DNA of 64,000 nucleotides from Paramoeba atlantica (taxonomy: Eukaryota; Protista; Discosea). Position 1 is the first letter of the stretch. Each line of letters starts with the position of its first letter. Positions 3,301 to 64,000 of the stretch are shown here, in pieces. The position numbers and the translations under genes were made by a program. The stretch covers positions 744,001 to 808,000 of the forward strand of contig CDRNVI010000012.1 in the NCBI GenBank assembly GCA_977017575.1, in the 5' to 3' direction. The notes beneath the pieces were generated by a model. It ran no database searches. It was not told the DNA's origin and worked only from the letters and a program-made list of their open reading frames with translations.

Positions 3301-4630
3301 ATATACACGGATATTTTCTTGCGGAGGAAGAAAACCTGGAAAACTTTCTTCTGCACGATGGCCGAACAGACCTTTATAGCTCAAATGTAGTTTCGACGCC
3401 CCGGTCCGATTCGCGGATCGTGTTACGGTTCCTTCGGAGATGTTCAAGGCGGTTTGTTTATCGAATGTCCACGCCACTGTGCATTTGGTTCCTTTTTTTA
3501 TTGAAGAACAAGACTTCTGTATGCGCTCGAAAGGAATGGGGAATTCGGTGTCTGGATTTATCGATTTTATGATGCCACCGATGTGGTTGTCTTGTTCCGG
3601 ATTTCCTTCGCTATAAAGTATGCTGATGACTTGATTTGTTGTTTCGGTTGGTTTGTCCTTTTCTTGTGTGTCTGGCGTGATGCAGTCGTAGAACTCGGTG
3701 TTACTTCCATACTCCTTGGTTTTGGGGCCCGGAGTCGTGCTAATTACCTGTATTTCGCTCGATGTGTCAGGTCGGAAACCTTCGTCGCCGTTGGGCGCAA
3801 TTTCGCCGTACTGAATCGGTTCGTTGTTTTGTACGCGTCCGTTTTCCTGGACGTTCTTTGTACTCTTGTTGTGCTCGTTTTCCTTTTGGATGATAGCATC
3901 CTGCAGAACTTTAGCCTTCTTACGGTAACTGTCCATGGCAACGGCCGACGGATTTAACGGTCGTAAAACGAGTTCATCCAGAGTAGTGGGATCTTTTGGT
4001 GGAGGGGTGGCCGCCTGAGCGTACGTTGGTTCCTTGCTCCAGTTCGTAAATGCTGTGTTCCGAGCGGTGTTCGTTCTTATTTTGATGCATCCTTCTGGGT
4101 GACGAATGGTTGGGCTCTCGTCTTGCGACACTTTGTCAGCTCTTGTCTGAAGAAGGTTGAGTTGTTTGTTTCGCCGATTGAAGAAATTTGAAGACAGCAG
4201 TGCGTTCTTAATTGTGACTTTGCAGTCACTTTTCGGCAGTGGGGTCGGCGATCGACGCATCGACGGAGGAGGAGATTGTGGACACTCAGATGGCGTTGAT
4301 GGTGGTGATGGCGGCGGTAGTGGCGGCGGAAGTGGCGGTGAAGTAGGTGACCGCGATGCGGCGGGGACGGGCGATGGAAGAGACGGAGTTTCAGTGGACA
4401 AAGTCGTGGGTGGTGAGGGCGGCGGGGGCGGCGGGGGCGGCGAAGGAGAAGCGCTCGGTTCGGACGGAGCCTCAGGCGGTTTCTCCTCAATTGTTTTCTT
4501 CCTGCGACGGGTCGGAGGTAGAGGCTGTACGACGGGAGCTACTCCCGTTTCTTTCGCCCGGCTCCGCGTGAACATGCCCATGAAAGTGAGAAAGTAATAG
4601 AAAATAAATCAAGCCAAGCGCATGACAAGC
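334..4630 (-). mobile_element. Full-length CRE/SLACS-clade non-LTR retrotransposon with poly(A) tail
   Basis: Single long ORF, 3' UTR with hairpins (TATAAGCTGAGTCAGCTTATA), A-tail at 334-351. Confidence 0.85.
514..4581 (-). CDS. Pro-rich N-terminus + reverse transcriptase + restriction-like endonuclease, 1355 aa
   Basis: RT motifs GVRPVAIGE, DMQNAFN, GVRQGS, AYIDD; C-terminal CPGC..H..C, KHN, RSGPDL..YDLTV. Confidence 0.9.
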   Translation of the reverse strand: MGMFTRSRAKETGVAPVVQPLPPTRRRKKTIEEKPPEAPSEPSASPSPPPPPPPPSPPTTLSTETPSLPSPVPAASRSPTSPPLPPPLPPPSPPSTPSECPQSPPPSMRRSPTPLPKSDCKVTIKNALLSSNFFNRRNKQLNLLQTRADKVSQDESPTIRHPEGCIKIRTNTARNTAFTNWSKEPTYAQAATPPPKDPTTLDELVLRPLNPSAVAMDSYRKKAKVLQDAIIQKENEHNKSTKNVQENGRVQNNEPIQYGEIAPNGDEGFRPDTSSEIQVISTTPGPKTKEYGSNTEFYDCITPDTQEKDKPTETTNQVISILYSEGNPEQDNHIGGIIKSINPDTEFPIPFERIQKSCSSIKKGTKCTVAWTFDKQTALNISEGTVTRSANRTGASKLHLSYKGLFGHRAEESFPGFLPPQENIRVYQIRWYRAPPAIDENLPIETREETHVKKARALKLDTGAEDVDHLPIPTAKTISPDFISSVIAIYRDIMHIYAESDYVQRNQIWNKVLSAMKLSLASVRQANSRQRRRRPIQQETVEHNQPEDEFFHEDKRAIKRATRLVLENCTSKASRILDCSFQKSTLTDQEKVQKLRALHPEQNCNFKVPEDAPIIAGIAVQELRCASRRLAKGVSPGPTGTTDSIVRLLIDDEPCCNSLCHMMSDLINGFLSRQVLQRLNRARLVAIDKPNGGVRPVAIGEIFSKLAGIILLQRYEKSLEPLFAPMQQGVFSQAGCERIVHKLRDRWLDGHSILTVDMQNAFNSPSREEIAKCVFAFATLKPFQRFFAAEYSNASELLFYGSDGSLTDIIMSSAGVRQGSALASLYFCVFCQPILETLASEFPGIEINAYIDDITLVSRDSTELEKAFFRLQGLLEEKQVKLAEAKCVWFRGKSGNSIPNSLSTQGVKSEDEAVKVLGAYIGENNTISERLLRQLEKQVTAFRRLKRMGINNISMILLAKCANVRQQYLIRVHPPETTEKASSQFDQEVENVVETWIGPLSPDQMKIVRLPVKKGGMGLTASSPLRETAYVASRYSVLERRNSFSARIDNAVPSHPSIPKNSTMKVIPVDKKTSTSIHHVEVLKELQTDPDIKPILQATSFKGNSDWILSNAKYIPSHLFKLAIMPRLNAQHPDLPTSLLCPGCGILLNNRNALTHIPGCAQCSGINTTVKHNSLVGFLHRLCVKAGIPCETEPRNFSTWKCIACRSTISPENQLVHQKTCAGKKLCRSGPDLVIYWNTGAVFYDLTVIHELSMSNRGKKCTQLMNDALQRKSNTYVRTNLIREDSFQCLPVLAGGALHRNTQNLVHSLADAAMLNRKQVELEMKLTIQELNGLGIYAQLKKYLDGCTQTQEYSI

Positions 4631-7003: not shown

Positions 7004-7900
7004 CTAGGGTTTTCCTTCAATATGACTGTCTAGCTTACCAATATGATGATGCTGATTATCGCTGTATTTGTCGATGTTGCCTTTATATTTCTCAACCTTC
7101 TCTCTCTCAATCTCCTTCCCGCGACTGACAGCATCCGCCGGGTTCTCATCCGTGGATATGTACGCTGCCTTGACACAAATACCTTTGTCCTCTGTCAGTC
7201 GCAGGACTTCGCGCAATTCCATTGAAACCCCCTCTGACTTGGAGATCCTCCTGTTCAGTGCAGCCTGACAGGAGGTGTTGTCAACAAAAACATCCAAGCA
7301 GGTTCCACGGGGGCAATGCGCGGAAAACTTCTCGAGGGCTAAGCGGACTGCTGCAGCTTCCGCACGGTTCACCTCATACGAGGATGACTCAGGCCACGCC
7401 TCTCCCGTAATCAAAACCTCTCCGCTGTCTAAATACATAATCGCTCCCCACCCTTTCACCGAGGCATCGGTGTAGAGACGATGCTTGTGTGGAACAACAT
7501 CGGGGTGGGGAGGTGGAGACCGTGGAACATTCTCCAACAACTCGTTTCTCCACTCTGCTAGCATGGAGCGAGTGACGACAGGGAGTGCGACCGGACGGTC
7601 ACATAACTTCGGGCAACGGTTCAACAAGTTGATACGCCGTTGCGCCACCTTCAAAGCGAAATAAAATCGCGGCATATTGAGCCGGAGAACTGCGGAGCCA
7701 TAAATGAGGCGCCCCACCACCGCCTCTAGGTCAACAAAGGAAATGTTGAAGAAAGAGTCGGCTCGCAGTTTCCTGATCACTCGCGGTCCCAGGCAGACCG
7801 TATGCGCGTTATGGTCGAACGCCACCCCATTGAACACGTACTGTGCTACAGGGGGCTGACCCCGATCTTTGAAAAGACCGTTCGCCTTGTCGCAACGCTC
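7004..7900 (-). pseudogene. RT C-terminus/DIRS-type RNase H remnant
   Basis: HRLYTDASVKGWGA, VFVDNTS, ENPADAVSR; homologous to 55023..56945. Confidence 0.85.
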
Positions 7901-8312
7901 GAATGAAACTGAGCGTTGCGAATGAAACTGAAATGGGCTGGAGCGCCTCGCCCAATTGAGTGGCGCGCGGGTCCTCGGGGGGCATTCGAAGAATCGCCCT
8001 CAGCAGCTCCTGGCGGCGTCCTCCTGGAGGCTGCGCGGCGTCGGCGGTTACGACGGCAGCGGTTTTGGCGGCGGCGGTCTTGGCGGCGGTGTAAACGGGA
8101 ACGGGAAGCCGGGGTAGAGGACGGATTGGGAGGGAGACGCTTCTGCGCCTTAGACGTAACGGGGAGAGAGGGCGGGGAGGAGGAGTAGTGCCACGCACGC
8201 GTGGCCGTCTTTCGCGCTGGCGGAGAGACGGGGAGGAAACGGGGGTAAGAATATCCACCCGTCGTCGCCTGGGACGACGGGCACGAGCAGTAATTGGGGT
8301 GGGGGGCATTTC

Positions 8313-9716
8313 CTAGTGGAAAGCCCGTGTTGCGCCGTAACGGCTGGCGCCGCCCACCACCCCGCCGCGAAAATCCTGTTGCGGGGTGCGTGTGGTACGG
8401 AACTGCCCCCCCTGCTGTTGGGACGCTTGGGGGCAGTTCGATCGGAGGTGGCCTGGCTGATGACAGCCAAAACAGAAAGGTCCTTGGCTGCGTCGACGAG
8501 GAGCACGCTGCGCAGTCCGGCCCCTCAGTTGCTCGTCAACCACAAGCTGACCGTAGCGGTCCTGAGGGTCGTCGTCACGGTGCAACCGCTGTTGCACACG
8601 CTCGACAGCAACGCCCGCCGCAGCCCAATAATGGTTGCGAAGCTCTTCGATGATGAGAAGGGCTACGGCGAGGTTGTGCTTCTCTAGCCATCCCTCCGTA
8701 TTGCACGCAGCGTACACCCATTCAGTTAACATCTTGAACAGGCGCTCACGCTGCGGCGGAGGGTTGAAGCGTACCCCAAGCTGCGGAGCTTCGCGCAGCT
8801 CACGGATGAGTTCACGTGGCTTGAACAAATCATCCGTGTCGATCCACGGTTGCCGAGTAACCGGATCGTAGGGGGAGAAGCCTTTCGGGTCCGTAATACG
8901 GACGCGTTCAAACGTGGGGATCAGATCTTCAACTGGTTTCCCACCCGGCATCTGCGCCCGAACATGGGCCAGTTCCAAAGAGTGGTAGTTGATCTCGGGA
9001 TGGGGAAAACGATAGGCAGTGTTCTTGTCCCCATCCCACTCGGCGAACAACTCAGTTGAGTTAGGGTCCTTAGGATGCGTCATATGCACCAACCCTATAA
9101 CCGTCTGCCGTAGGCCGTCACGGGGAAGGGACCATACAGCCTCGACGGTGACCTCGTAGTCCTTGCGCAGAAGCTCAATCACTTTCGTGATGAACTCTTC
9201 TTTGCTGGATTGTGTCATGATCCCACGCGCATCACAGCGTGAACGCTGAGGCAACTCGACGTGGTCAATGTCAAGGGCCTCGTAACGGCGCGGCGAGCGA
9301 GAAGCCTCAACCTGGTCGGGGTTAAGGGTTCCTCTTCGTCGCATATGGGGCTCGGGAGCCTCCAGCGGAAAAGGGTACGGGCTAGGGAGGGAGCTCGCAG
9401 GCAAACTGGGAAGGTTGGAAGGGAGAGGGCTAGGCGGTTCGCGGGCGGGGCTGAGTGCTCTTCCTGAAGGGCGTACCTTTCGGCGCGCTGGGACAGGAGT
9501 AGGGGGAATCGGAGGAGGTCGCGCGGATACCTGCGGAGCCGGCTGCGTGGGGAGAGGGGGGAGAGGGGGGCGCACGGGAGGGCACGAAAGGGACTGACGC
9601 TTAGAATGGTCTTGGACGGAGGAGGTCTGAATGGGTGTCGGCGCCCTATTCCGCTTCGGTGATCTATCGCGCTCCTGGCGTGGCTCCGACGGAGCCCGTA
9701 AACGTTGGGATCTCAT
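8313..9716 (-). CDS. Gag-like protein with zinc knuckle (CFGCHQPGHLRSNC)
   Basis: Homologous to 53135..54211 (RELREAPQLGVRFNPPPQRERLF); start taken at MRSQRL. Confidence 0.8.
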   Translation of the reverse strand: MRSQRLRAPSEPRQERDRSPKRNRAPTPIQTSSVQDHSKRQSLSCPPVRPPLPPLPTQPAPQVSARPPPIPPTPVPARRKVRPSGRALSPAREPPSPLPSNLPSLPASSLPSPYPFPLEAPEPHMRRRGTLNPDQVEASRSPRRYEALDIDHVELPQRSRCDARGIMTQSSKEEFITKVIELLRKDYEVTVEAVWSLPRDGLRQTVIGLVHMTHPKDPNSTELFAEWDGDKNTAYRFPHPEINYHSLELAHVRAQMPGGKPVEDLIPTFERVRITDPKGFSPYDPVTRQPWIDTDDLFKPRELIRELREAPQLGVRFNPPPQRERLFKMLTEWVYAACNTEGWLEKHNLAVALLIIEELRNHYWAAAGVAVERVQQRLHRDDDPQDRYGQLVVDEQLRGRTAQRAPRRRSQGPFCFGCHQPGHLRSNCPQASQQQGGQFRTTRTPQQDFRGGVVGGASRYGATRAFH

Positions 9717-9895
9717 ACACAAAACTTTAAACGTAACAAAATAACAACCTAACAAGAATATAACAAACGAGTAAACACCCCCCTCCATGCAATTAGAGAA
9801 TACTACATCATAATTTGAGAAAATTATGTGCCCCGAAGGGCCAGCAGGCAAATATATAGCCGCCCCTCGGCTAAATTTCAAAACGTGAACTATTA

Positions 9896-11119
9896 CTGCA
9901 TACCTCGGCTTTTAGTTCCAATACGTCGAAGTGTGATCCCGAATTCCGAATTCTGCATTGCTCGCTCGAGTATTCTGTCCAGACACATTATAAAAAGAAA
10001 CGGGGCAAGGACATCACCTTGAAGCACTCCAGAGGAGATGTCAAAATGATCTGTTTCCCCGAAATCGACACGGACGTATCCAGAGGGCGCATTGTACGAC
10101 GCAAGAATCATCTGCCTCAGCATTGGCGGCACTGCAAAAGCATCCAGTGCTTTTTTGATGGCGTCATGTGATATCGAGGGAAACGCGCTCTGAAAATCGA
10201 TGAATCCCAAGAAAAGATCATGTGCATGCCGAGATGCCTTTCCGAATACTTCTGTTAGAATCGCTTGTGCACCAACTGTCGATCGAAAGGGTCGGAAGCC
10301 AAACTGTGCATTACGCAGTCTTGGTTCGATTTCTGGTTGTAATCTATTCAAAATCATGTAGTTCACCAATTTGGCTATGTGATTCGTCAAACAGATAGCA
10401 CGCCAGTTTTTCAGCTGAGAGAGATCCCCTTTTTTCGGAATTGGCACATGAAGTATTTCGCGCCACGAGTCCGGCGTATATCCCTTTAAGTACACCGAGT
10501 TGATCAAACGTAATAATGTCCTGGATAACTCGTCGTGCTCGGTTAGCGCGCAGTATGCTTCTATCGGGATATCGTCAGAACCAGTGGCTTTCCTTCGAGC
10601 GATTTGCTTCTGCGCTGCCAACAGCTCCTCGAACAAAAAAGGGTCATCACACATTTTAATACCCTTAACTTGCTCAAAGTCTGTGGACGAGTTTTCTTTC
10701 ACTGGGCAATAGTTTGCTGCAAAGTGCGTTTTCAGCGTTTCAAGCTTATCTTTGACAGACTTTCCTTGTACATGAATAGCTGTCCTTTCATCCCCTATAA
10801 CCTCCTTAACCATCCTCCAGGATCCTCGCGGTCGCTTCTTAAAGTTCTCTAAATTTTGGCACTCCAACTGAACGAGGTCAGTAATTTGCTTTTCATGTTC
10901 TCGCACAAACTTATCGAAACGTTTCCTATTACTTGATAATTTGTATAAAGCTTGCAGATTTACCGGTGCGTCATTACATACTGGAGTGGCAAAACTGAGA
11001 GGAACATCTGTTTTCGGCTGAGACTTGAGACACATTTGCGCCTCCTGGATACTTGTTTTTACTGACAACCATAATTGCTCGACATCCCTGTCTTCTAACT
11101 CACTTTGAGAATGATCAGG
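9896..11119 (-). mobile_element. Internal RT part of the same LINE copy as 4633..6211 (matches about 24133..25356)
   Basis: Near identity to the intact LINE; ends exactly where the other half begins. Confidence 0.9.
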
Positions 11120-12913: not shown

Positions 12914-13109
12914 TATAAGTTTACGATAAGAAATTTAGGAGACTTTATTTTGTTGATATTGCAGATGGTGCCCCGAAAGGGGTCTAAACTGTTTTCAAAT
13001 TCTACCCCGAAATGGGTCTAAACTATTTATCTATGTACCAGGGATAGATTGAGGTAATTATAAATATACTGTATATTAGTGACATTTCCTCCTATAAACA
13101 ACAAAAACG

Positions 13110-13678
13110 TAGAACCAACCCGCCAAATGGAGCCCGCGACCCCATGGCATATCAGAAAGTTGCGCGCCAAACTCATACCAAGGGATTCGATAGCGGTGTT
13201 GATCTGTTGGAAAGCCGCGGGCCGATGGACCGAGGTAGCCGAATTGACCAAAGACCGGTTTGTCAAGGTGGACGACAACGAAGTAATTGTGTATTGGGGG
13301 CGGCAAACGAAAACCACACGACTCAACCCGTATCGGTTATCCATGTGCACAACGATAGTGGGTCCAGGGACTCCAGAGATAGCTCAACACGTCAGGCATA
13401 TGATTGCAGGGCAGCGCATAAGCGCCACGACAGTACGGGAGATGGATCTCCGAATACGCAAGATTCTGGGCCCGAAATTCGGAACACATTCCATCAAGCG
13501 CGGAGCGGTAACGTACCTGTTTCAGGAGGTTGCTCTAGGAAGACTAACAATATCAGACGTTCAAAATCTCGCAAAACATCAGCACATTACCTCCCTATTA
13601 CGGTACAACGCAAACCTGGTGACCACCGCGAGAGCGCTCGGTACACAGCGAGCTTCGGCTCTCCTGCAACTCCAATAA
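13110..13678 (+). pseudogene. Tyrosine recombinase C-terminal half
   Basis: AGRWTE (R), GTHSIKRG (HxxR), KH...LLRY (H, Y). Confidence 0.9.
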
Positions 13679-15320
13679 CACAAGCTGATGTAGATAGGTG
13701 CCTCGAGCAGGTCCGACATGTTAAGCGGTATAGCATTATTTGTGCAAGGAGAACTTCGCGCTTAGCTAAGGCGCAGGACATGCATCACCCCTTACACGTT
13801 AAGACGGGAATTCCTACTATGGAACTGGATAAAGTTAAGTCTTGGATGAGGAATGACACGCGAAGCCGACTAGAGCGCATTATGAATAAAATGTTTTGCA
13901 CCAAAGTACCACCACAGCCTGAACCATCCATTAAAGGGAATCTTCTTACGAAGGACATCAACGAACTGATCACAGCGAATGTTATTCAACGAGTTTCGGA
14001 TCAAATGGCCCGCGACATACCGACTATACAGTACCTCGTACCCTTTACGGTGGTGGAAGCTGACGAATCAGGGAAATCCAGACGACGTTTTATTTCATGG
14101 ACTAAGGATGACAATGAACGCCTGAAGGAATATGATCCGCTCGTGCCGCTGCTCCATCCGGCGAAATACCTTCATCGTGTGGAAATGGAGGTCGGGGTGA
14201 AAAGAGATCTCAAATGTGGTTTCTATCAGGTCCCGGTCCCAGAGCGCGCGCGCGCGAAGTTTCGGTTTCGTGATTCCCAAGGAAATCTCTATCAGATGAA
14301 AGTTATGCCCATGGGGCATAGATGTGCCCCGGAAGTGATGCATACTATCACGTCCGTGCTGGCCGGTGACCCGGGAGTGTGTAAACCGGAAGCGAGTTTT
14401 GCAAAGAGCAATGTTGATATATATATCGACGGGATTCGCTACACAGCGAGCAAAGAGGAAGCCATTGGATATGCCAAGCGGATTGATTCCCGCTGTAGAG
14501 AAGCTAATGGAGCCTTTAAGGAGCATGGCTCACCCCCGGAACTGGAGTATGTGTTTAATGACGTAAACTACGATCATATAGTGCACAAGGTCAGCCTGGG
14601 ACCTCGAGTACTACTGAAGTTACATCGTGATCGATTTAACACTATTACGTACGCCCAATTGGAGACGGCGGTGGGGCGTCTCCTCTACGCCTCAGCAGTC
14701 CTTGGGTATGTTATTCCGCGTTTTCATTTTACGCTCAAAATTGCGAGGCGCCGTATTAATATGTTAAACCGAAATCTTCACCTAGCGGATAAGCCGGTAC
14801 CTCTTCCTAAACCCACGAGATGCATCCTAGCCGAGTGGCGGGACGAAGTGCTAAAGAATATACCCATTGAACCACCTCCGCACCCAGACGTCGTGCCCCA
14901 TACGCACCGCCTATATACCGACGCATCGAGCAAAGGGTGGGGAGCAGTGCTATATCTCGATGACGGGGGGTACAGATTACAGGTGACTCTTGGCCCAAAG
15001 AATTTAAATATGAGGTAAATCATGCCGAGGCCATGGCCGTAACCAATGCTTTGAAGGACTTCAAACATCACTTTGAGAAGGGGACGTGTATTGACTTATA
15101 CATAGATAACACGTCTTGTCAGGGCGCCATTAATAAACGTATGGCGAATTCCGATAATATCGCTAGCGAACTGAAGAAAGTTTTACTGATGAATCAGAAT
15201 CAAGGGATTTGCATCAAAGCGCGGTACATACGGTCCGAAGACAACCCAGCAGATCCCGTGAGTCGTTTAGATAGGCATACAAAATTTCATAATCTACAAC
15301 AATTGGTCAGCCGCCACTGA
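13144..15320 (+). CDS. RT/RNase H ORF overlapping YR in the -1 frame; one frameshift in a G-run near 14970
   Basis: RDLKCGFYQV, MPMGHRCAP, YIDG, YTDAS..GWG, YIDNTS, NPADPVSR. Confidence 0.85.
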
Positions 15321-50599: not shown

Positions 50600-51269
50600 G
50601 ATGTTTCTCAAGCTTCTGGACAAGTTTCTCGCTAACGCGCGCAGTCTCTCCAAGGAAAGCTCCAAGAATCTTGATAACGTCGGCTTCGGCGGTGATGCCG
50701 TGATTATTCAGACTGGACGGCATCGGTATATCGTTCTTGCCGCCAAACCAAACGCATTTTTGTGGTGCCAACTCGATTAACCTGTCGTGCAAAAGGTCGG
50801 CTAGACGCGTATAAGCACTAGACAGAAGATGTGCCTCGGTGGAGACAAGATACGACAGGGATTTCAACTTGAGATTGAAAAGATGTCCGCATACACGGTG
50901 GTATCTCAACTACGTGAGTACATTCCGAAGGATAACTGGATAGGTGGACTTCGCTTCTAGAGGGTCACTAAGTGTGTTCGAATACTCTCTCTCCCCCAGT
51001 CTTCTCTCACTTTGCTTCTTCTTTCTAAAAGTTTACGGATTGAAATTCAGGAGGGATTATATTTGAATAGGGTTTGTTAATAATTATGTACGTGTATGAA
51101 CTGTATGCATTTTCGCGTGAAATTGATTTTATTCTTATGTGACTGTATTAGTGACTATTCTATTTGGGTAAAGCTTCAAAAAAGGCCGCGCTTGCCTTGA
51201 TTGGAGGGGATGTTGTCTTTTTATCTAGCGGTAAGTGTAGGATACCTTGTGGACCCTCAAAAAAAAAAA

Positions 51270-52215
51270 AAAAAAAGACAAGATTAATATCGTCAATGAA
51301 TGCAAAAATGCGAATTCCTGGGAATTCGTCGTGGAGTGTCTCAAGGATCGGTTGTAGGAACGCACAGAACAGAATGGATGATAGAGGCGATCCTTGTCTA
51401 TCTCCTGCAGAACTCTTGAGAATCTTGAACAGTTGCCCATCGCTGCCGTAGTAAAGCAGTTCCGAGGGGACTCCGTATTCGGCGGCGAAAAGTCTTTGGA
51501 AAGGACGCAAAGCATGGAAGGCAAAGACGGCTTTTGCAACATCATCGCGCGAAGGCGAATTGAACGCGTTTTTCATGTCAATAGAGAGAATGGCGCAACC
51601 TTTCATATAGTGTTCGGTAAGCTCGTGGATGACGTGTTCGCATCCGGACTTTATCATCACCCCGTATTGATGCGGTGTGAAAAGAGGAGCCAGTTTCTTC
51701 TCGTGGCGTTGTAGAAGCACAACCTCAGCCAGTTTAAGCCAGACCTCTCCGACCGCTATGGGGCGAACTCCGTTTGATGGTTTAGGAATGGCCACAAGGC
51801 GTGCTCGCTTAAGGCGGTTCATGATTTCTTTGGAAAGTAGTCCGTTGATGAGGTCTGTCATCATATGACAAAGACTCAAACAACAAACTTCGTCATCCAG
51901 CAAAAGGCGCAGAATAGTGTCCGTTGTGCCTGTAGGCCCTGGTGAGGCACCTTTGGCCATTCGCCGCCCAGCTTCTCGTAATTCCAGGGGTGTGATGCAA
52001 GCTGTTAGTGGGGCATCGCTGGGCAGTCGAAAGGTAGTGGCTACTTCCGGATGGAGAAGCTTCAACTTCTCAGCAGTTTCTTCGTCGGATAGGATCCTTT
52101 CTCGAATTTCCTGATCGAGCACTCTGGTTGCTTTCCTCACACAACCGTCTAAGACAAGACTAGTGGCTTTCTTAATCGCACGTTTGTCCTGCTGCTGGTT
52201 CCTGTTCTCATCTAA
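51270..52215 (-). pseudogene. CRE-clade RT fragment
   Basis: GVRPIAVGE, DMKNAFN, RQGSPLS, FIDD. Confidence 0.85.
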
Positions 52216-52972
52216 GTCTTGCGGTTGGGAAGATCCCCACAGGCACAAGAAAGAACTACGCAAAGACCGGTGTCGGCCACGCAGAGACCGGTGGCGGCCA
52301 CGCAGAATCGTACTCAAGCCACGGAAAATACGGCAACAGATCCGTCGTCCCCATTTCAGAAGTTGCCGTCTCCGCTACCGGTTACGAATATTTCCGTTGC
52401 AGAACTCATGTCTCCACAATATTCTTCTCCACCACCCTTTCTGGTAACAGAAGCCACCCCTAGACCCTTGACACCCGGTATCATGTCACCTGATGATGTG
52501 TTAAATGAATTTCTGGATTGCGATAGCCCGCCGACAGCACATGAGCAGCAGAGATTCGAAAAAGAAGATTTGCGAATCACAGATACATCAGGAAATGTAA
52601 ATGCGGTCACCCGGATAGTTCGAGCGCTTTACGCTACGGTGCGGATTGATGTTGACTTCCCCCTGAGCCCAGAACGAATAGCGCAGCAGACGAAAGACGC
52701 TCGACGAGGGAATGAATGCGTAGTTGCATGGAGTTTTGATCGACAGCCCTTGTTGAATATCTCGATTGGAGTGGTGGATTCAGTTAAAACAAGAGCGGGC
52801 ATTCGCAAAATAGCTATCGACTATCAGGGGATTAAGGGTCATCAAGTACAAGAAGCTTTCGTGGGGACCTTACCACCGCAAACGAATGTTAGGATATACA
52901 GAATAGTGTGGATGGATGGACAAGTCGGACCGGAAGCCCAAGGAAATCCTGGCGACTCACCCACTACAAATC
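52215..52972 (+). pseudogene. CRE-clade N-terminal region, continued at 57811..57910
   Basis: CVVAWSFDRQ..LPPQ aligns with 514..4581; in-frame rejoin TTNQSD..DLEPIPTVKSI. Confidence 0.8.
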
Positions 52973-53134
52973 TAGAAGTTCACGGAAGGAAATTTAGGAG
53001 GGGCTTTATAGTGATGAAAATTGGCCGACGGGCATTGTACGTTTTATTTATGAATAGTTTCTATAGTGATACATGGAAATAAATATTTTATATATTTTGA
53101 TAGTAGTCTTCAAGTTTGCTAAGTACTACGAGTT

Positions 53135-54211
53135 ATGTCTGGTATCGTTGATGCGGTGCGACGGGCGGTGTCGATGACACGAGCTGAAAGTCCGCCTCCC
53201 GTCGCTCCTGATCCTCCTGCATCTCGACGTCGAGGGCCACGACGCGAGCGCAGGGATGGAACGCTGAATCCCGAGCAGGTGGAAGACCGCGAGACCCGTG
53301 TAATGACTGATGTCGAAAAAGGAGAGTTCCAAGCTCGAATAGTTGATATTTTGCGAGCGAAGCGAAAGGTTAGGATCAAGGCTGTGTGGGCGGAGCAGGG
53401 AGATGGTTTTCAGCAGGTCGTCGAAGGGTCAGTCTCTTTTAAGTTCCCCAAAAAACGAAACAATGATGAGTTGGTTGCAAAGTGGGATGACGAACCTAAC
53501 AAAAGCTATCCTTTTCCTCATCCGCGAATTCGATATTTTGCCCTTGAGATCGTGAAGGTTGATAGCTGTATGCCGGACGGTATTGAAGACGGTTCCCTCG
53601 CGGCTCAGCAGGCGGAGATGGACCTACGCGCTGTGGTTCCCGATGACCCAAAGAATTTCTCTCTGTACGATCCGACTACGTGGGGACCTTGGTTGAATGC
53701 TGGCGATGAGTTTAAAGCAAGAGATTTGATTAGGGAGCTGCGGGATGCACCCCAGTTAGGAGTCCGATTTAATCCCCCACCGCAACGCGAACGACTGTTT
53801 AAGCTCTTGATCGAATGGATTTATTCTGCCCGTGAGTGGCAGGACTGGCGGGATGGTCATTTTCTAAATATGGCAGTGATAGTTGTAGAAGAGCTTCGCA
53901 GCCACTACTGGGCCGCCGCCGGAGTGGAAGTTGAACGCGTTCATCAAAAGCTGTACAAGGAGGAGAACCCGGGAGACAAATACGGTCAAGCCATGATTGA
54001 AGAGCATTTGCGTGCTACACAGCTAAATCGTACGCGCGGACGGACATTCCGTCAACGAGTCTGTTATAACTGTCGGCAAACTGGACATTTTCGGGCCGAC
54101 TGCCCCGCCTTGAATCGACCGGGTTTCGGGCGAGGGGTGGCAAGCAGCACCGTGACCACCACCGCGGCAACGACGATGCGTGGTGCTCGCGGCGAAAGAC
54201 GGCCTTACTAG
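53135..54211 (+). CDS. Gag-like protein with CCHC knuckle (CYNCRQTGHFRADC)
   Basis: ORF track; homologous to 8313..9716. Confidence 0.88.
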   Translation: MSGIVDAVRRAVSMTRAESPPPVAPDPPASRRRGPRRERRDGTLNPEQVEDRETRVMTDVEKGEFQARIVDILRAKRKVRIKAVWAEQGDGFQQVVEGSVSFKFPKKRNNDELVAKWDDEPNKSYPFPHPRIRYFALEIVKVDSCMPDGIEDGSLAAQQAEMDLRAVVPDDPKNFSLYDPTTWGPWLNAGDEFKARDLIRELRDAPQLGVRFNPPPQRERLFKLLIEWIYSAREWQDWRDGHFLNMAVIVVEELRSHYWAAAGVEVERVHQKLYKEENPGDKYGQAMIEEHLRATQLNRTRGRTFRQRVCYNCRQTGHFRADCPALNRPGFGRGVASSTVTTTAATTMRGARGERRPY

Positions 54212-56945
54212 GAAATGGCCCCCACCCCGAATACTGCTTGTGCCCAGCCGTTGAAACGACGGCGGGTGATTTTATTAAACACGTCCTATCATTCTTCGAG
54301 ACAAGAATTCACGATGCCTCGTGCCGTGCAGCGACAAATTCGTCCATCCAACAACACGATTCGGCAAAACACCTCGACGGTGCACAGTCTGACCGCCAAA
54401 ATCATGAAAGTCGACCCAACCACAGCGACGGGGCGAATAGTGGTAACGGCTGTACAGCCTATGTGGACGCAAGGGACCTGGCTTTCGAGAAGTCGACTAT
54501 GGACGAGGATGGAAGAATTTTGTCGAAAGCAGCGAGTTCCTCTAAACGCCAATTCAGCAATCCAATTCCTTCAAAGCCTACCGGTAGCTACCTCGACACG
54601 TCACAGTTATGTGAAAAGCCTGCAGTCCGTACTCAACCTGATGTCGTACGAAGTGACCCCGCTAAAATTGTACTCAAGAGCTCTTCAAGCCCAAGGCGCA
54701 CTGGAGCCACAAAGGCAGATGCTGCCCGTCACGCCTTATTTACTAAAGAAGCTAGCTTGTCGAGTGACAGCGCCGGAATGGATGGCGATACTAATTTGTT
54801 GGAAGGCGGCAGCCAGGTGGACAGAGGTTGCGCAGCTAACAAAAGTGAACTTTGTGCTAATACATCCGGAAGAAATTGTCATTTATTGGGGAAGGACGAC
54901 GAAAAGTACGCGACTCAATCCATATCGACCGTACCTATACGCAATCATCACCGGCGAGGGTACACAAGAATTGGCAAGCTACCTGATCAATCTACCCCAA
55001 CGTCAACCAGTATGCCGAACGAATGTGCGACAGATGGATCTTCACATGCGAAACATACTGGGAAACGGTTATGGCACTCATTCCATCAAAAGGGGGCAGT
55101 CACGTACCTGTTCCATCAGGTAGCTTTAGGACGAGTCACGCTGGCAGAGGTTCAAAATTTGACCAAGCACATGAACGTGGAATCCTTGCTGAGGTACAAC
55201 GCGAGCAATCTGACAACGGCTCGCGCACTCGGGACTCAAAAAGTGACTGCGTGCTTAACACTCCACTAGGAAGCAGCGACTCGCGAGGAAGGGTCCAGGG
55301 AATAGGATACTCTCTGTCGGTGGTAGGTCCTTCTTCTAAGCTGACTGGTATCGATTTGGAACAATGCTTCAAGGAAGTGCCGTATCTGAAGAGGCATTCC
55401 ATAATTCATGCGCGCCGATCTTCTCGGGTGGCCACAGCTACCGACATGCATCTTCCTTTGCAAGTGAAAACAGAAACCCCGACTATGAATTTGCAGCTAA
55501 TTCAGGAATATATGAATCCGAGCGCACGGCAGCGTTTCAAAAACGTTCTTCAAGAGCTCTTCTGGGTACCTCTTCAACCTGATTCAGAACCTACGAAACA
55601 GTCAGAAGTGCAGGAGCAGGACTTACAGGCTTTGCTGCAGGCTGGGGTGATTGAGCGAGTGGACAAGAAGGGGGAAAAAAGGTTTCCTACAAGACAATTC
55701 ATAATTCCTTTCTCGGTAGTAGAGAGTGATGATGAGGGCCGGCAGCGCCGCAGATTTATCGCATGGACCAAATCGGACAATACAAGGCTGAAGGGCTACT
55801 CTCCGGAAGTGCCTCTGTGGCATCCATCTAAGTATTTATATAGAGTACACGACGAAGTCGGACTTAAGCGAGATCTCCGTTGTGGATTTTATCAGGTTGC
55901 CGTTCCGGTTCAAGCGCGACGGAAATTTCGGTTTACGTCAGCGGCAGGGGAATTGTTCCAAATGAAAGTTATGCCGATGGGGCATCGCTACACCCCAGAA
56001 ATTATGAACACCGTCACTGCAGTTTTGGCAGGTGACTCTCGCGTATGTTCGGCGACGAGATCGTTTGGTGTAGGAGAATGTGACGTCTACGTGGATGGCA
56101 TCCGCTTTGTGGGCACGGATGCTGAGGCGAATAAGTTCGCTAGCTTTGTGGATACCCGATGCCGGGTCGTCGGAGGGGCTTTCAAGGATGTGGGCAAACC
56201 TCCGCAGAAGCAATACGTCTTCAACGGCGTGCGCTATGATCACGGGATGCATCGGGTAGCTTTGGGTCTGAAGGTAGTGTCGAAGCTCGCAACCGATCAA
56301 TTTCATCACCCGACTTTTATAGATCTGGAGGCGACGGTGGGGCGTCTCATATACTGTTCTTCAGTAGTCGGAATTGTGATCCCTAAATATCATTTCGCTC
56401 TAAAGATTGTGCAACGACGCATCAATCTTCTTAATCGGTGCCCGTGGATCGGATACAAGGAGGTCAGCTTACCTATCAAGACGCGTGCCATGCTGGCAGA
56501 ATGGCGCAACGAGATTCTGAACAACGTTCCCATAGTTCCATCACCTCATCCTGACATGGCGCCGCATCAGCATCGTCTTTATACGGATGCCTCAGCAAAG
56601 GGCTGGGGTGCTATTTTGTATCTTGATCAAGGCGAGGTCTTGATTGCCGGAGGTCCGTGGGAAAGAGGCACTGAGTACGAGGTTAATCATGCGGAGGCAA
56701 AAGCAGTCCGCTTCGCGCTTGAAAAATTTGCGGAACATTTTCCACGAGGAACCTGCCTGGATCTATTCGTGGACAATACGTCCTGTGAGGCAGCGGTTAA
56801 CCGACGTATGACCTCTTCGACAAATATTGCTCATGAATTAGAACAAGTTCTTACACATTGCAAATCTCTGGGAATATGTGTACAAGCGCGATATATTCGC
56901 TCAGAAGATAACCCCGCTGATCCGATCAGCCGAATGGAAATGTGA
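54121..56945 (+). CDS. Pol (overprinted linker + RT + RNase H), predicted to be entered by -1 frameshift from gag
   Basis: Frame open from 54070 once the G-run is corrected; RDLRCGFYQV, YVDG, YTDAS, FVDNTS. Confidence 0.75.
54215..55269 (+). CDS. Tyrosine recombinase; one base missing in a G-run at about 55092
   Basis: AARWTE, GTHSIKRG, then AVTYLF..KH..LLRY in the next frame. Confidence 0.88.
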
Positions 56946-58373
56946 GTTAAGATTCGGATTACGCATTTATGGAAGTGCAACAATAATAACTTAAATTGAA
57001 AAATAAAACAGTGCATACGTTTTTCGTCCGTAAGAGGAATTGGCCCTTCTTCTGGTTATTTGATTACGGTTATTTGATTCTGTTAGCAATACTACATATT
57101 GGATACTAGTGTTTGGGTGCAGTGACGTGTGCTTGGGTTCGGTTGGCGGCGGATCCGGACGGAAAACCCGTTCACTTAGTATCATCTACAAACAATATAG
57201 TTTTTGATTTTCTCATGATATTTCTAGACAAGCGCTTATTTTTCATAGTTTGATTTGAAGGAAGAAGGTACGAAATTGTATGTTTCATAGTACGGTTTTC
57301 ACATCTACAAGAATTTAAGTAGGTTCATATTTCAGATTTTAGAAGTTGTATTTCAATGAAGTAGGTGCCCCGACGTGAATTTCTAGAAGTTCACGGAAGG
57401 AAATTTAGGAGGGGCTTTATAGTGATGAAAATTGGCCGACGGGCATTGTACGTTTTATTTATGAATAGTTTCTATAGTGATACATGGAAATAAATATTTT
57501 ATATATTTTGATAGTAGTCTTCAAGTTTTGCTAAGTACTACGAGTTACCCACCCACCGGCCCCCGCCATTTGGCGGCGGATCCGGACGGAAAACCCGTTC
57601 ACTTAGTATCATCTACAAACAATATAGTTTTTGATTTTCTCATGATATTTCTAGACAAGCGCTTATTTTTCATAGTTTGATTTGAAGGAAGAAGGTACGA
57701 AATTGTATATTTCATAGTACGGTTTTCACATCTACAAGAATTTAAGTAGGTTCATATTTCAGATTTTAGAAGTTGTATTTCAATGAAGTAAGTGCCCCGA
57801 CGTGAATTTCAAAGTGATCCATTAATTCCAAGCGTGACCAATACGGAATGTGATTTGGATTTGGAGCCAATTCCCACTGTCAAATCGATAGGATCGGAAT
57901 TCGTCCCGTGCGTCCGATCGGAATTCGTCCCATAGCGGTTTGATGATTGATGATTTTTAGGCAATATATCTCCGAGGAGATGTTACGGGGAGGGGGGGCA
58001 CTCGATGAATATTCATCGAACGGACAGCGCGTTCGATGAATGAAAACGCAATTTTTTTTGTAAAAAAATGCTCGACGAACGGAGCTTGTTTTTTTATTGT
58101 AAGCGAGATTGAAATACCGTTGGAAAAGGTTATAGTCCTTGCGCGCACTAATAGGGATCGTGAGGACACGTACAGAAACAGCATCTTTATGTCTTGAAGG
58201 ATTAAACCTTGCTTGCATGGTATTCTTGCGCCCAAAACAATTTTTTTTTCATTTTTTTTATTTTTTTTTATTTTTTCTTGTTTTTTTTAGCCAGTCAGGT
58301 TGAGCCCTGAGTCCCAGCAAAATAAGTAATACACAAAAAAAAGACTGCGTATGAACAAATATTATAAAAAGCA

Positions 58374-60592: not shown

Positions 60593-61160
60593 CCTGCGTA
60601 GCGAAAACTACGAAATTCAGTGAGCTTCGCAAATTGCTTCCCACTAACGACGCACAGGGGAATCCTACGCGGGGTACGGCTCAGGCCCGCTCACGCGGGC
60701 CCTCGCCGTTTCGCGGCCGCGCGCACCCCCGCTCACGCGGGGGCCCCCGCGCGGCCAAAATGGGTACTAAAATTTGTTATCAAGGTAGTTGGGCTTCGCA
60801 AATTGCTTCCCACGAATCTAGAGAGAAGCACACGTACAATAATCTTTAACGATAAATATACAGTTTCTGTACCTTGTTGATTATTTACTTTTTTTACCTT
60901 TCATGGGAGTGTTCACACGCTCCAAAGCAAAAGAATCAGGAGTAGCTCCTGAGATTTTGCCGCTTGTTTGTTGAGTACTCAACGAAAATCCGGATTTTCT
61001 CGACGAAATCAACGAACGTACCCCCAAGCCAAAATATTATTATGTCCCAGGGCTACGCTCACAGTTGGGCCTTGCTCGCAAAGGGGGGCTTTTGCCTCCA
61101 GAAGTGGGCTACGCTCACAGTTGGGCCTTGCTCGCAGACGGGGGCCTTGCTTGCACACTT
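60593..61160. repeat. Repeat-rich segment upstream of the Merlin ORF, shared with about 36690-37270
   Basis: Near-identical GC-rich block and GCTCACAGTTGGGCC sub-repeats. Confidence 0.8.
60844..60962 (+). other. SL relic (one G>T variant) fused to the 5' UTR and first codons of a CRE ORF (MGVFTRSKAKESGVAP)
   Basis: Matches the N-terminus MGMFTRSRAKETGVAP of 514..4581. Confidence 0.8.
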
Positions 61161-61164
61161 GGGC

Positions 61165-62000
61165 TTAGCGGGACGCTAAGTTTAGAGCAGAAGGTGCCGG
61201 AAAGGCAGAAATTGATGAAGTTATTGCTGGGTGTGACAATAATGAGTCCCGAAATAAGGATGGCTCTCGATGCAATGGGGGCAATGTGGAGCGTTTCGAC
61301 GTGGCGGACACGGGCACGAATATGGGAGCGCCTGTCAGCCTTTTGCACGGGAAGGGGGATACGGATAGCGGCGTTACACGCCGTGACTTTTCTTGCCAGT
61401 TTGCAGATAAGAATACAGGCGAAACTAACTTACGCCCGAACCCTCGCCTCGATATTAAACCTTGCAGGGGAAAATACGAACCCGTTAAAATTCTACGTAA
61501 AATCTCTAATGGCGGAAGGAGAGACGGAACCATGCCGTCAAATGGAACCCCTGACGCAGCAGCACATTCAGAAATTGTGGAACCACATGGCATCCCGCGA
61601 AAAACATACGCTGCTGCTGTGCTGGAAGGAGGCAAGCCGTTGGTCCGAAACGGCAGCGTTGACCAGAGAACGGTTTTACGAAGTGGCGTCCAACAGAATT
61701 GTAATTTGGTGGGGAAGGCATACGAAGACGTCCCGCCTAAACCCATATCGCCCATCCATGTATACCGTCATCGAGGGACCGGGCACGGAGGAGCTCGCAA
61801 GGTATGTAGCGCAACTAAAGCCTCTCCAACCGATGTCATGGGCTACAACTTCACAAGTGGATGTCGAGATAAGGAAAATTCTCGGATTGGGTTTCGGGTC
61901 ACATTCGGCAAAGCGCGGGGCGATCACTCTTCTTCTCGCGGAGGTGGCAAACGGCAATCTAAATTTGGAGGAGGTCCAGCATCTTGCAAAACATCAGAGC
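61165..62000 (+). pseudogene. Tyrosine recombinase fragment (element 4), truncated by insertion of element 5
   Basis: ASRWSE, GSHSAKRG, LAKHQ; -1 frame stop-free. Confidence 0.85.
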
Positions 62001-64000
62001 GAAATCAACGACGAGAGTCTTCCACATACATTAAAAACAACTTGTAAGAAAACATTGTTGTAAGAGCTAAAGAAATATATCGCTGATATCCTGAATCTCA
62101 TCCACTGCCTATATTTACTAGCTAAAGAATATTCGTATTATTGATGCAACTATCCGGATGTATATAGCGCGCAAACTATTTCAAAAGCATAATATAAAAA
62201 TATAATACGTAGTGAAGGGGCTTTGCCCCCTGGCAAGCAGCCACTGGTTGGGGGCTGGTGGGAGGGCATCGCACACTAATAAAAATAACTTGTAAGAGAA
62301 TGTAAGCTATAAAACTATACACAATCTACAGAAAGTTATAATTTAAAACATATTAAAAGATATAATAGAATTCATAATCAGAGATTATGTGCCTCGTAGG
62401 GCCATTCGAGAAAAAGGAGTCTTTTCAAATTCGTATTTGCTCTCGTCTAAATTTCCTCTCGTAAACTATCAGAAATCAACGACGAGAGTCTTCCACATAC
62501 ATTAAAAACAACTTGTAAGAAAACATTGTTGTAAGAGCTAAAGAAATATATCGCTGATATCCCGAATCTCATCCACTGCCTATATTTACTAGCTAAAGAA
62601 TATTCGTATTATTGATGCAACTATCCGGATGTATATAGCGCGCAAACTATTTCAAAAGCATAATATAAAAATATAATACGTAGTGAAGGGGCTTTGCCCC
62701 CTGGCACGCAGCCACCACCCCGATCGCTCGTCTCCTCACAACATCCTGTCTCTCGTATATTAAATCGCTGCACGTTCCACATATAAAATTCCATTGCGAA
62801 GCTGGCCAAGCTGCGAACGGAAGCTTGATAAACCTACATTTGATCATTCACTAAATACATATTATTATTATTTTTTTAAGAAGAAGAAGAAGCAATCATT
62901 TTTTTTGTGTGTGTGTGTGTTTAATCTCTAAAAATTTCTGCTTATTGGGTCCGCTGGATTTAGTTTCGTAGAAATATAATGAGCTTGAATACATATTCCT
63001 TTATTCTTTAAACTCTGTAAAATGCTTTTCAATTCTTTCGCTATGCCATCAGACTTGCATATTTTCCGATTCAACGCTACTCGACAAGACGTATTATCAA
63101 TCCAAAGCTGAACGCAAGTCCCTTGCTCGAAATATTTTTGGAATTCTTCGAGGGCGAATCGCACCGCCGCCGCTTCTGATTTGTTAACTTCGTAGGTCCA
63201 TTCTGCTGGCCAAGGTGCGCCCAAAATCTTAACCTCTCCGCTATCCATGTACAGAATTGCTCCCCATCCTTTTGAGGAGGCGTCTGTAAAGAGTTTATGA
63301 CGCGGAGGTGCAGTGGCGGGGTGAGGGGGTGCTCTTATCGGCACGTTTTTAATCAAGTCGTCACGCCATTGAGCTAAGATCACACGAGTTTTCATGGGAA
63401 GATCCACGATTTTGTCCTTTGCAAAAGGATGTCGGTTCAAGTAATTAATACGTCGTTGTACTATTTTTATCGCAAAGTGATATTGCGGGATTACCACACC
63501 AAGTATCGAAGAGCAGTACAGTAGACGCCCCACCGCCGCCTCCAGCTCTAAGAAAGTGAGTCTCGAAAAAGTATCCCGTTTCAATTTGCTCACAACCTTC
63601 GGTCCCAAGCAGACCCGGCTTGATGCGTGATCAAATTTCACTCCGTTGAACACGTATTATTTCGTCGGAGGAACGTCCTGATCTTTAAATCGAGCTCCTG
63701 CCACTCGCGCACGCGAGTCAATAAAATAAACATACTCGTCTGCATGTTTTCTAGATCCGGAAAAACGAACTCCATCTATATAGATATCAGTAGAACCGTG
63801 TTGATACGACTGGGATTTTGAGCAATAATCTTTATTTCCTGCCAACGCTGCTGTCATGCAATGCATAATTTCAGGCGCACATCTGTGGCCCATGGGTAAA
63901 ACATTCATTTCGTATAATTGCCCATCTTCTGCACGAAACCGAAACTTTGCTCGGGATCGTAAGGGTAAGCCAACCTGGTCAAAACCACACATTAGATCAC
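62001..64000 (-). mobile_element. 3' part of a VIPER/TATE-like YR retrotransposon (element 5): RT/RH + B1-A2-spacer-B2
   Basis: YIDG, FTDAS, WIDNTS; B1 62472-62715 = B2 62001-62244; in-frame TAA at 63657-63659. Confidence 0.88.

Follow-up and report, generated by a model that had tools for sequence, protein, structure and literature searches.

How can the reading frame of one enzyme run through the entire gene of another without meeting a single stop codon, and how would ribosomes come to read it? This question is raised by element 3, a retroelement found in 64,000 nucleotides (nt) of DNA from Paramoeba atlantica (GenBank assembly GCA_977017575.1, contig CDRNVI010000012.1, positions 744,001 to 808,000 of the forward strand). 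We refer to this whole stretch as the window and number it from its first letter. Element 3 encodes a gag-like protein, a tyrosine recombinase (YR) and a reverse transcriptase with RNase H (RT/RH), and a preliminary description, made from the letters alone, proposed that the RT frame overprints the whole YR gene as a long linker of a Gag-Pol protein. Our reading, to which we give a probability of about 0.8, is that element 3 is a VIPER-like element making a Gag-linker-RT/RH protein through a -1 shift at the end of gag, and that the overprinted frame, here called the corridor, has been kept open by selection.

A stop-free frame across the recombinase gene

The YR gene of element 3 (54215-55269, plus strand) is read in the frame of gag, its ATG standing 6 nt past the stop codon of gag. 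Frame 1, which is at -1 to YR, is stop-free from 54070 to 55267, that is, over 399 codons spanning the 3' end of gag and all of YR. Within this stretch, the overprinted corridor proper (54127-55092, plus strand) runs for ~320 codons up to a run of five G (55092-55096, plus strand), the sole frame break in the element, where the frame of RT/RNase H takes over. The preliminary description had explained this break by the deletion of one G, and the contigs of the public runs X1, X2 and X3 do carry, at full depth, an extra G after 55091 (six G, against five in the window). No break is present at this position in element 2 or in any related locus.

The window holds four further copies or fragments besides element 3, and the same frame is open in those that were used for comparison. 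Element 2 (13048-15016, plus strand), which is truncated at its 5' end, consists of a single unbroken open reading frame (ORF) formed by corridor and RT, with the YR (13064-13678) at +1 relative to that ORF; its -1 frame is open over the whole of 13048-15016, across YR (13064-13676) and unbroken into RT. Element 4 is a fragment (60975-62063, plus strand) whose -1 frame is open over 61169-62045 and across its YR (61257-62021). The openness that had been described for elements 2, 3 and 4 is therefore borne out. Element 1 (7006-9911, minus strand) is internally deleted; it retains gag, a frameshift cassette (8376-8296) and a stub of YR, and the remnant of its RT stands in a different frame. The frame across its stub, described earlier as open, is indeed stop-free for 229 codons (8535-7848) over the deletion stub, but it is out of frame with the RT remnant of that copy.

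For a broader view, 18 YR copies were examined, three from the window and 15 from related loci. Eight of these loci (L001-L008) are the DNA of relatives recovered by a protein search with the RT domain, and their predicted proteins have N-terminal extensions of 200-400 residues; four more distant loci (L009-L012) came from an exhaustive profile search, and L010-L012 gave usable YR copies. The identity of RT is as low as 32-39% in some of the related loci. In all 18 copies the -1 frame of YR contains no stop codon. When synonymous codons are permuted within the YR frame, which keeps both the protein and the codon usage, 4-12 stops are expected in the -1 frame of each copy, and about 141 in total over ~5,260 codons; the probability of finding none is at most 0.01 for every one of the 18 copies. 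The control frames behave differently: the +1 frame of YR has 13-30 stops in each copy, and gag and RT have 17-40 in their -1 frame, in both cases in line with their own shuffles. Between copies, the proportion of synonymous differences (pS) lies at 0.68-0.90, in gag and RT as much as in YR; synonymous sites are saturated, so that the copies represent near-independent trials.

The openness of the -1 frame is thus real and strongly non-random. The chance estimate originally attached to it, (61/64)^340, was too naive, although the shuffles give an even stronger result; the stop-depletion test suggested at that time has now been run, and no intact copy with stops in the -1 frame was found among the 18. 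The synonymous-constraint test suggested alongside it has no power here, given that pS is saturated in every pair of copies, and it was replaced by a comparison of identity between frames, presented below.

The open frame is also tied to the RT. Of the 17 copies that keep an RT remnant, 13 have RT at -1 to YR and in a single ORF with the corridor; the exceptions are element 3 itself, broken at the G-run, L005b, whose RT lies in another frame, and L002 and L005a, which are interrupted inside RT. In nine copies the distance from the proposed slip site to the start of RT homology amounts to 321-438 stop-free codons, and the ORF formed by corridor and RT opens upstream of the gag stop in all cases.

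A candidate frameshift cassette and a proposed route to the reverse transcriptase

Where this ORF overlaps the end of gag, the sequence has the anatomy of a -1 programmed frameshift site. In element 3, a slippery heptamer in the gag frame, G_GGU_UUC (54121-54127), is the proposed shift site. It is followed by a 6-nt spacer (54128-54133) and by the 5' arms of two helices, P1 (GGGGTGG, 54134-54140) and P2 (CAAGCAG, 54141-54147), whose 3' arms (CCACCCC, 54222-54228, and CTGCTTG, 54234-54240, respectively) lie just past the gag stop; all of these parts are on the plus strand. The order of the arms, a-b-a'-b', is that of a pseudoknot.

This combination of an in-frame G_GNU_UUY heptamer, a spacer of exactly 6 nt, P1 and P2 is present in 13 of the 14 copies that keep the end of gag, L008 being the exception, and in those 13 copies the heptamer stands 50-100 nt upstream of the gag stop. 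Other copies carry GGAUUUU, GGUUUUU, GGUUUUC, GGGUUUU or GGAUUUC; the variants with G_GAU and G_GUU are non-canonical at the P site. G_GAU_UUU is the shift site of red clover necrotic mosaic virus. In a nine-copy alignment, P1 and P2 are paired in 95% of the cells (P2 alone, 93.7%), as opposed to ~47% in slid controls, and compensatory changes are seen at four of the seven pairs of P2, as in CGAGCGG:CUGCUCG, CAAGCAG:CUGCUUG, CGAGUGG:CUACUCG and ACUGGCC:GGCCAGU. P1 is GGGGTGG:CCACCCC in the main family, and is altered yet still complementary in the distant copies L010b, L011, L012 and L008, with pairings such as CGGGGG:CCCCCG, GGGGGA:TCCCCC and GGGACG:CGTCCC. The structural claim is built on this covariation, in place of single-sequence folds and of a pseudoknot scan, which scored little above shuffles in these GC-rich sequences. 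Rfam gave no match in the window.

The cassette also accounts for the one part of the overprinted peptide that had been described as conserved, the motif LGNxPHPxYCxCP at its start. The conservation is real, but it resides at the nucleotide level: CCACCCC and CTGCTYG, the 3' arms of the two helices, read as PHPxYCxCP in the -1 frame, so that what is conserved is an RNA element and not a peptide motif.

Two related loci show peculiarities in this region. L003 (900-990) has a 31-nt tandem duplication at the gag-stop region, in which CCAATAGGGATTGT occurs twice, and this places gag in the corridor frame. L008 (940-1030; Logan SRR22388340) retains the helices CCGGGGGUG:CACCCCCGG and GCCAC:GUGGC.

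Taken together, these features suggest the following course of events. Most ribosomes would translate gag and terminate at its TAG, whereas a fraction would slip by -1 on the heptamer, stimulated by a structure that begins 6 nt downstream and has its 3' arms just beyond the gag stop. The shifted ribosomes would read the last ~28 codons overlapping gag, then the whole of YR in the -1 frame (~320-440 codons), and finally RT/RNase H, giving rise to a Gag-linker-RT/RH fusion. YR, which lies in the gag frame behind a single stop, would be made by readthrough or re-initiation. Because the shift site is upstream of YR, any -1 stop across YR would be lethal to the element; as a consequence, the frame would be kept open while its amino acids drift as a disordered, mostly basic linker. 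We infer the frameshift, the translation of the corridor and the identity of the protein products from sequence.

Among the other explanations, the one that survives best, improbable as we consider it, is independent translation of the RT ORF, starting at an internal AUG or a near-cognate codon, or on a separately trans-spliced mRNA; the open stretch would then belong to RT as an N-terminal extension, with no fusion to Gag. The alternative start sites of ORF3 in some copies from Trypanosoma cruzi (PMC5146736) would be in keeping with such independent translation. However, no ATG in the corridor is conserved in position. The first one comes only 57-255 codons past the slip site, after stretches adding up to 911 stop-free codons, and L011 lacks an ATG throughout its 356 codons, which makes an AUG-initiated entry unlikely. 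Moreover, the open frame always reaches back beyond the conserved slippery site, and independent translation would leave the heptamer, its 6-nt spacer and the covarying helices without explanation.

The corridor could instead be a case of true dual coding, with a functional, constrained domain, for instance a protease or a module that binds nucleic acids, encoded in the -1 frame. The length and basic character of the corridor, and the fact that a protease between gag and RT is common in retroelements, speak for this idea, which the peptide itself nevertheless makes very unlikely. Between codon-aligned copies, its identity is 0.18-0.36, no higher than that of the non-coding +1 frame (0.21-0.38) and far from that of the YR frame (0.41-0.70), in agreement with the poor conservation noted for the overprinted peptide in the preliminary description; likewise, synonymous sites are no less saturated in YR than in gag and RT. 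The corridor peptides are hydrophilic (grand average of hydropathy, GRAVY, -0.7 to -1.3; 70-74% polar residues; -0.94 and 70%, respectively, in element 3) and mostly basic, with isoelectric points of 9-11 in the main family. The corridor peptide found no match in Pfam, and no conserved D(T/S)G motif was noticed in it, although no dedicated scan was made. Its AlphaFold2 (AF2) model has a mean predicted local distance difference test score (pLDDT) of 38.8, a predicted template-modelling score of 0.12 and no secondary structure, whereas YR, encoded by the same DNA, reaches a mean pLDDT of 76.5; the peptide is accordingly predicted to be disordered. Since the identity in the -1 frame equals that of a non-coding frame, Pfam gives no match and the model is disordered, the corridor is to be regarded as a spacer and not as a second protein, with selection acting on its openness alone.

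It might also be thought that RT is reached from YR, through a Gag-YR-RT product made by readthrough plus a -1 shift within the YR/RT overlap, the openness upstream of it being incidental. The overlap of ~170 nt, with RT at -1, would offer room for such a shift, and single-ORF fusions of YR and RT exist in Diplonema papillatum. Yet we rate this route marginally below dual coding: no conserved slippery site was found in the YR frame near the end of YR, which makes a shift there unlikely; five of 11 copies have no heptamer anywhere in YR; and the absence of stops upstream of the overlap, where ~141 would be expected, would have no cause. Finally, an origin of the open frame by chance or composition, through codon bias or GC content, might be suggested by the GC content of 48-61% and by the long ORFs in several frames of the GC-rich D. 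papillatum locus L009; it is effectively refuted by the shuffles and by the many -1 stops that gag and RT contain at an equal GC content.

The long Gag-Pol linker through YR that was originally proposed is therefore supported by the continuity of the frame, the cassette, the stretch lacking ATG, the unconstrained and disordered peptide, and the lack of a slip site at the YR end. Several observations nonetheless weigh against it. Regarding the open frame, there is an ascertainment bias, about half of the copies having come from predicted long ORFs; this is partly offset by six of the 18 (elements 2 and 4, L004a, L005b, L010a and L010c), which were found via YR homology and not by ORF length, and which also contain no stops. 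In addition, the corridor is not obligatory in the group, YR and RT being encoded in a single frame in some D. papillatum relatives, and the words sampled were not found in the single RNA run listed. Regarding the cassette, P1 is invariant in the main family, so that its support comes only from distant copies; single-sequence folds barely beat shuffles (z -0.6 to -1.7); the loop between P1 and P2 is long (24-90 nt); and the two helices might be alternative structures rather than one pseudoknot. In L008, moreover, gag ends in AUU_UUU_UGA, and relative to the gag frame upstream of it RT lies at +1 and YR at -1; either gag has suffered an indel in this copy, or another kind of shift takes place on the U-run.

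Limits, gene content and relatives of element 3

Element 3 is a single retroelement of 4,838 bp (52971-57808, plus strand). Its limits are given by contigs from all four public runs, which splice 52970 straight to 57809 and omit exactly 4,838 nt; the exact ends are TCTAGAAG...GTGAATT, with two ambiguous bases (TC). In all four runs the depth of this 52970/57809 junction in the contigs exceeds that of element 3 itself. Since empty-junction contigs outnumber the element in depth, element 3 is inserted in another repeated sequence, other copies of which lack it. The element is bordered by split direct repeats: A1 forms its 5' end (52971-53135) and is 99.4% identical to its partner A2 (57382-57547), and B1 (57143-57383) is 99.2% identical to 57570-57810, the stretch that holds B2 (57570-57808), which follows A2 after a 22-nt spacer; all four are on the plus strand. 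The run contigs also contain variants from near-identical copies, namely a 196-nt skip from 55768 to 55965 (three runs), an ATCG inserted after 54113 (one run) and a 10-nt deletion at 57055 (one run).

The gag-like ORF (53135-54211, plus strand; 358 aa), as given in the ORF list, ends with a TAG at 54209-54211 and encodes a CCHC zinc knuckle (Pfam zf-CCHC, E=6.8e-7, residues 308-324). The RT/RNase H domain (55095-56945, plus strand) lies in frame 0, open over 55023-56945, and has homologues (P0002-P0014) with E-values down to 5e-205; every RT and RNase H-like Pfam match of element 3 stays under the curated cut-offs of that database. Its ORF ends at 56945, 197 nt before B1, and Pfam, which matched RT and RNase H-like families only, revealed no methyltransferase after RNase H. 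According to tblastn maps of element 3 and 12 related copies, the gene order is gag, YR, RT/RNase H, all on one strand.

The recombinase is harder to recognize by sequence. Pfam Phage_integrase matches are weak, four intact copies were missed by Pfam altogether, and a sequence-profile search of the PDB was marginal (E=0.003). However, the AF2 model of the family alignment has most of residues 82-385 above a pLDDT of 85, and its top PDB matches in Foldseek are Cre and Tre (E=7e-8, template-modelling score ~0.6, ~320 columns); judging by this model, YR is a genuine recombinase with a two-domain Cre-like fold. In the alignment R235, K264, H323 and H353 are invariant and Y362 nearly so. All 14 YR copies have Lys at H+3, followed by Arg or His at +4 (HSIKRGA, window ~55077-55097); by our reading of this motif, Cre has its second catalytic Arg at H+3. 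In element 3 the YR frame is broken at the G-run, so that its C-terminal 58 codons, including that of the catalytic Tyr, are in frame 1.

Gag and YR share one frame with a single intervening stop in every undisrupted copy (12 checked), the main family using UAG with a G behind it and the other copies UGA. The codon 6 nt past it is ATG in five of 13 copies, one of TTG, ACG and AGG (each a single base away from ATG) in four, and unrelated in the remaining four. YR would be made either by readthrough of the stop or by re-initiation at this ATG.

Outside the window, the closest named relatives of the element 3 RT are hypothetical proteins of D. papillatum. In some relatives from this species (P0173, P0172 and P0097; 1,190-1,630 aa), YR (approximately residues 480-730) is fused in frame to RT/RH with no overprinting, as in KAJ9461657.1 (1630 aa), with YR at residues ~485-731 and RT in the same frame. 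L009, the D. papillatum locus mentioned above, was set aside from the YR comparison, its YR being undetectable and its long ORFs lying in several frames of GC-rich DNA. A second, distant family is represented by L010 (ENA ERZ24900291, ctg3704c), where three copies stand head to tail within 10 kb, all of them overprinted; the RT of this family is 31-33% identical to that of element 3.

Just upstream of element 3, the minus strand carries an ORF for a non-LTR-type reverse transcriptase (51160-52317; Pfam RVT_1, E=3e-17). A 287-aa ORF without family match (52219-53082, plus strand) overlaps both the end of this ORF and A1.

VIPER and other known systems

We call element 3 VIPER-like on the grounds of gene order, repeats, domain content and frame layout. 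Element 3 and VIPER share the order gag, YR, RT/RH, repeats of the A1...B1-A2-B2 type (PMC6681497), a CCHC motif in gag, the lack of a methyltransferase, and an RT/RH ORF in the -1 frame that starts before the gag stop and overlaps YR. In the Repbase consensus of T. cruzi VIPER, ORF1 spans 169-1509, YR 1510-2517 and RT/RH 1386-4214 (PMC5146736). From these coordinates it follows that gag and YR occupy one frame, and that the RT ORF runs at -1 from 124 nt before the gag stop over all of YR. The RT ORF of T. cruzi VIPER is thus already documented to overlap YR completely (PMC5146736), albeit with little discussion, and the arrangement is not a new one. A survey from 2025 draws both VIPER and TATE with 'two overlapped ORFs' (PMC12278014), whereas according to an earlier review Viper 'does not usually harbor ORF overlaps' (PMC3266345). 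No frameshift, slippery site or pseudoknot was found for VIPER in the papers searched, whose coverage excluded Lorenzi et al. 2006 and Vazquez et al. 2000, and the conserved recoding cassette together with selection for openness alone is apparently unreported.

Inspection by eye suggests that VIPER carries a similar cassette. In the T. cruzi Dm28c copy of VIPER (PMC6681497, supplement 10), CCA UCA AAA AAC is read in the gag frame and followed, after a spacer of 6 nt, by a perfect stem of 10 bp, GGGGCUGCCG...CGGCAGCCCC, whose 24-nt loop carries UCA UGA AUG, that is, the gag stop and then the YR start. A VIPER copy of Crithidia fasciculata from the same supplement shows A_AAA_AAA and, 6 nt further on, a stem of ~11 bp that encloses the UGA of gag; its YR is read in the frame of gag and, also by eye, shares the YR motif MWA..TW..R. 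The two types differ in that VIPER has an A_AAA_AAC/A heptamer and a simple hairpin, whereas the family of element 3 has G_GNU_UUY and two helices in pseudoknot order with a 24-90-nt loop. Moreover, VIPER comes from kinetoplastids, whereas the nearest named relatives of the element 3 RT are from D. papillatum, which would suggest a euglenozoan host, probably other than a kinetoplastid. Element 3 therefore seems to represent a branch of VIPER-like elements of the diplonemid type.

A wider generalization, which we put forward only tentatively and hold at somewhat less than even odds, is that a single RNA element, made of the slippery site and a structure enclosing the gag stop and the YR start, sets three fates: termination (Gag), a -1 shift (Gag-linker-RT/RH) and readthrough or re-initiation (YR). 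Such a double-recoding switch would date back to the ancestor of the VIPER-like elements of Euglenozoa, those of the diplonemid type as well as T. cruzi VIPER, and would be, judging by the papers searched, the first expression strategy based on recoding to be shown for the DIRS order.

The arrangement bears on the means by which tyrosine-recombinase retrotransposons balance the amounts of Gag, recombinase and RT that they make. What was a curiosity of coordinates becomes a testable mechanism, with a cassette conserved with covariation in very distant copies and apparently also in T. cruzi VIPER. The corridor would further represent an unusually clean natural case of an overlapping frame, ~1 kb long, selected only against stops, and hence a benchmark for those overlapping-gene detectors that use synonymous constraint, which would miss it. 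It also provides an annotation rule, a Gag-RT fusion with a hidden YR, for euglenozoan genomes and marine metagenomes, in which gene callers now report the long RT ORF only.

Other groups show parts of this organization. TATE, from Leishmania (Viannia) and other trypanosomatids, resembles element 3 in its gag-like ORF, its two overlapped ORFs for YR and RT/RH and its split direct repeats (PMC12278014). It differs in having a much longer YR (982-aa alignment), and some copies from Bodo saltans are single-ORF (PMC6681497). VIPER/TATE-like contigs in the marine bins 'Oceanobacter' and 'Handelsmanbacteria' were suspected by their authors to come from an unsequenced free-living kinetoplastid (PMC6681497, supplement 6). 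The many relatives of element 3 in metagenomes and in D. papillatum suggest diplonemids as their likely source.

DIRS1-like elements are also YR retrotransposons with an extensive overlap of pol and YR in about half of 28 annotated elements (PMC3266345). However, their order is gag, pol (RT/RH/methyltransferase), YR, with inverted terminal repeats and an internal complementary region, and the overlap joins the 3' end of pol to the 5' part of YR, sparing the catalytic YR domain (PMC3266345). Closer at hand, the single-ORF relatives of D. papillatum have homologous YR and RT/RH, which, contrary to those of element 3, are fused.

The -1 frameshifting between gag and pol in retroviruses and long terminal repeat (LTR) retrotransposons relies on an X_XXY_YYZ heptamer, a spacer, and a stem-loop or pseudoknot to produce a Gag-Pol fusion. 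The cassette of element 3 follows the same plan, with an in-frame heptamer, a 6-nt spacer and a downstream structure near the end of gag. Unlike in those systems, however, the stretch crossed by the shifted frame carries no protease or other domain of its own, and consists instead of a complete, separate enzyme gene.

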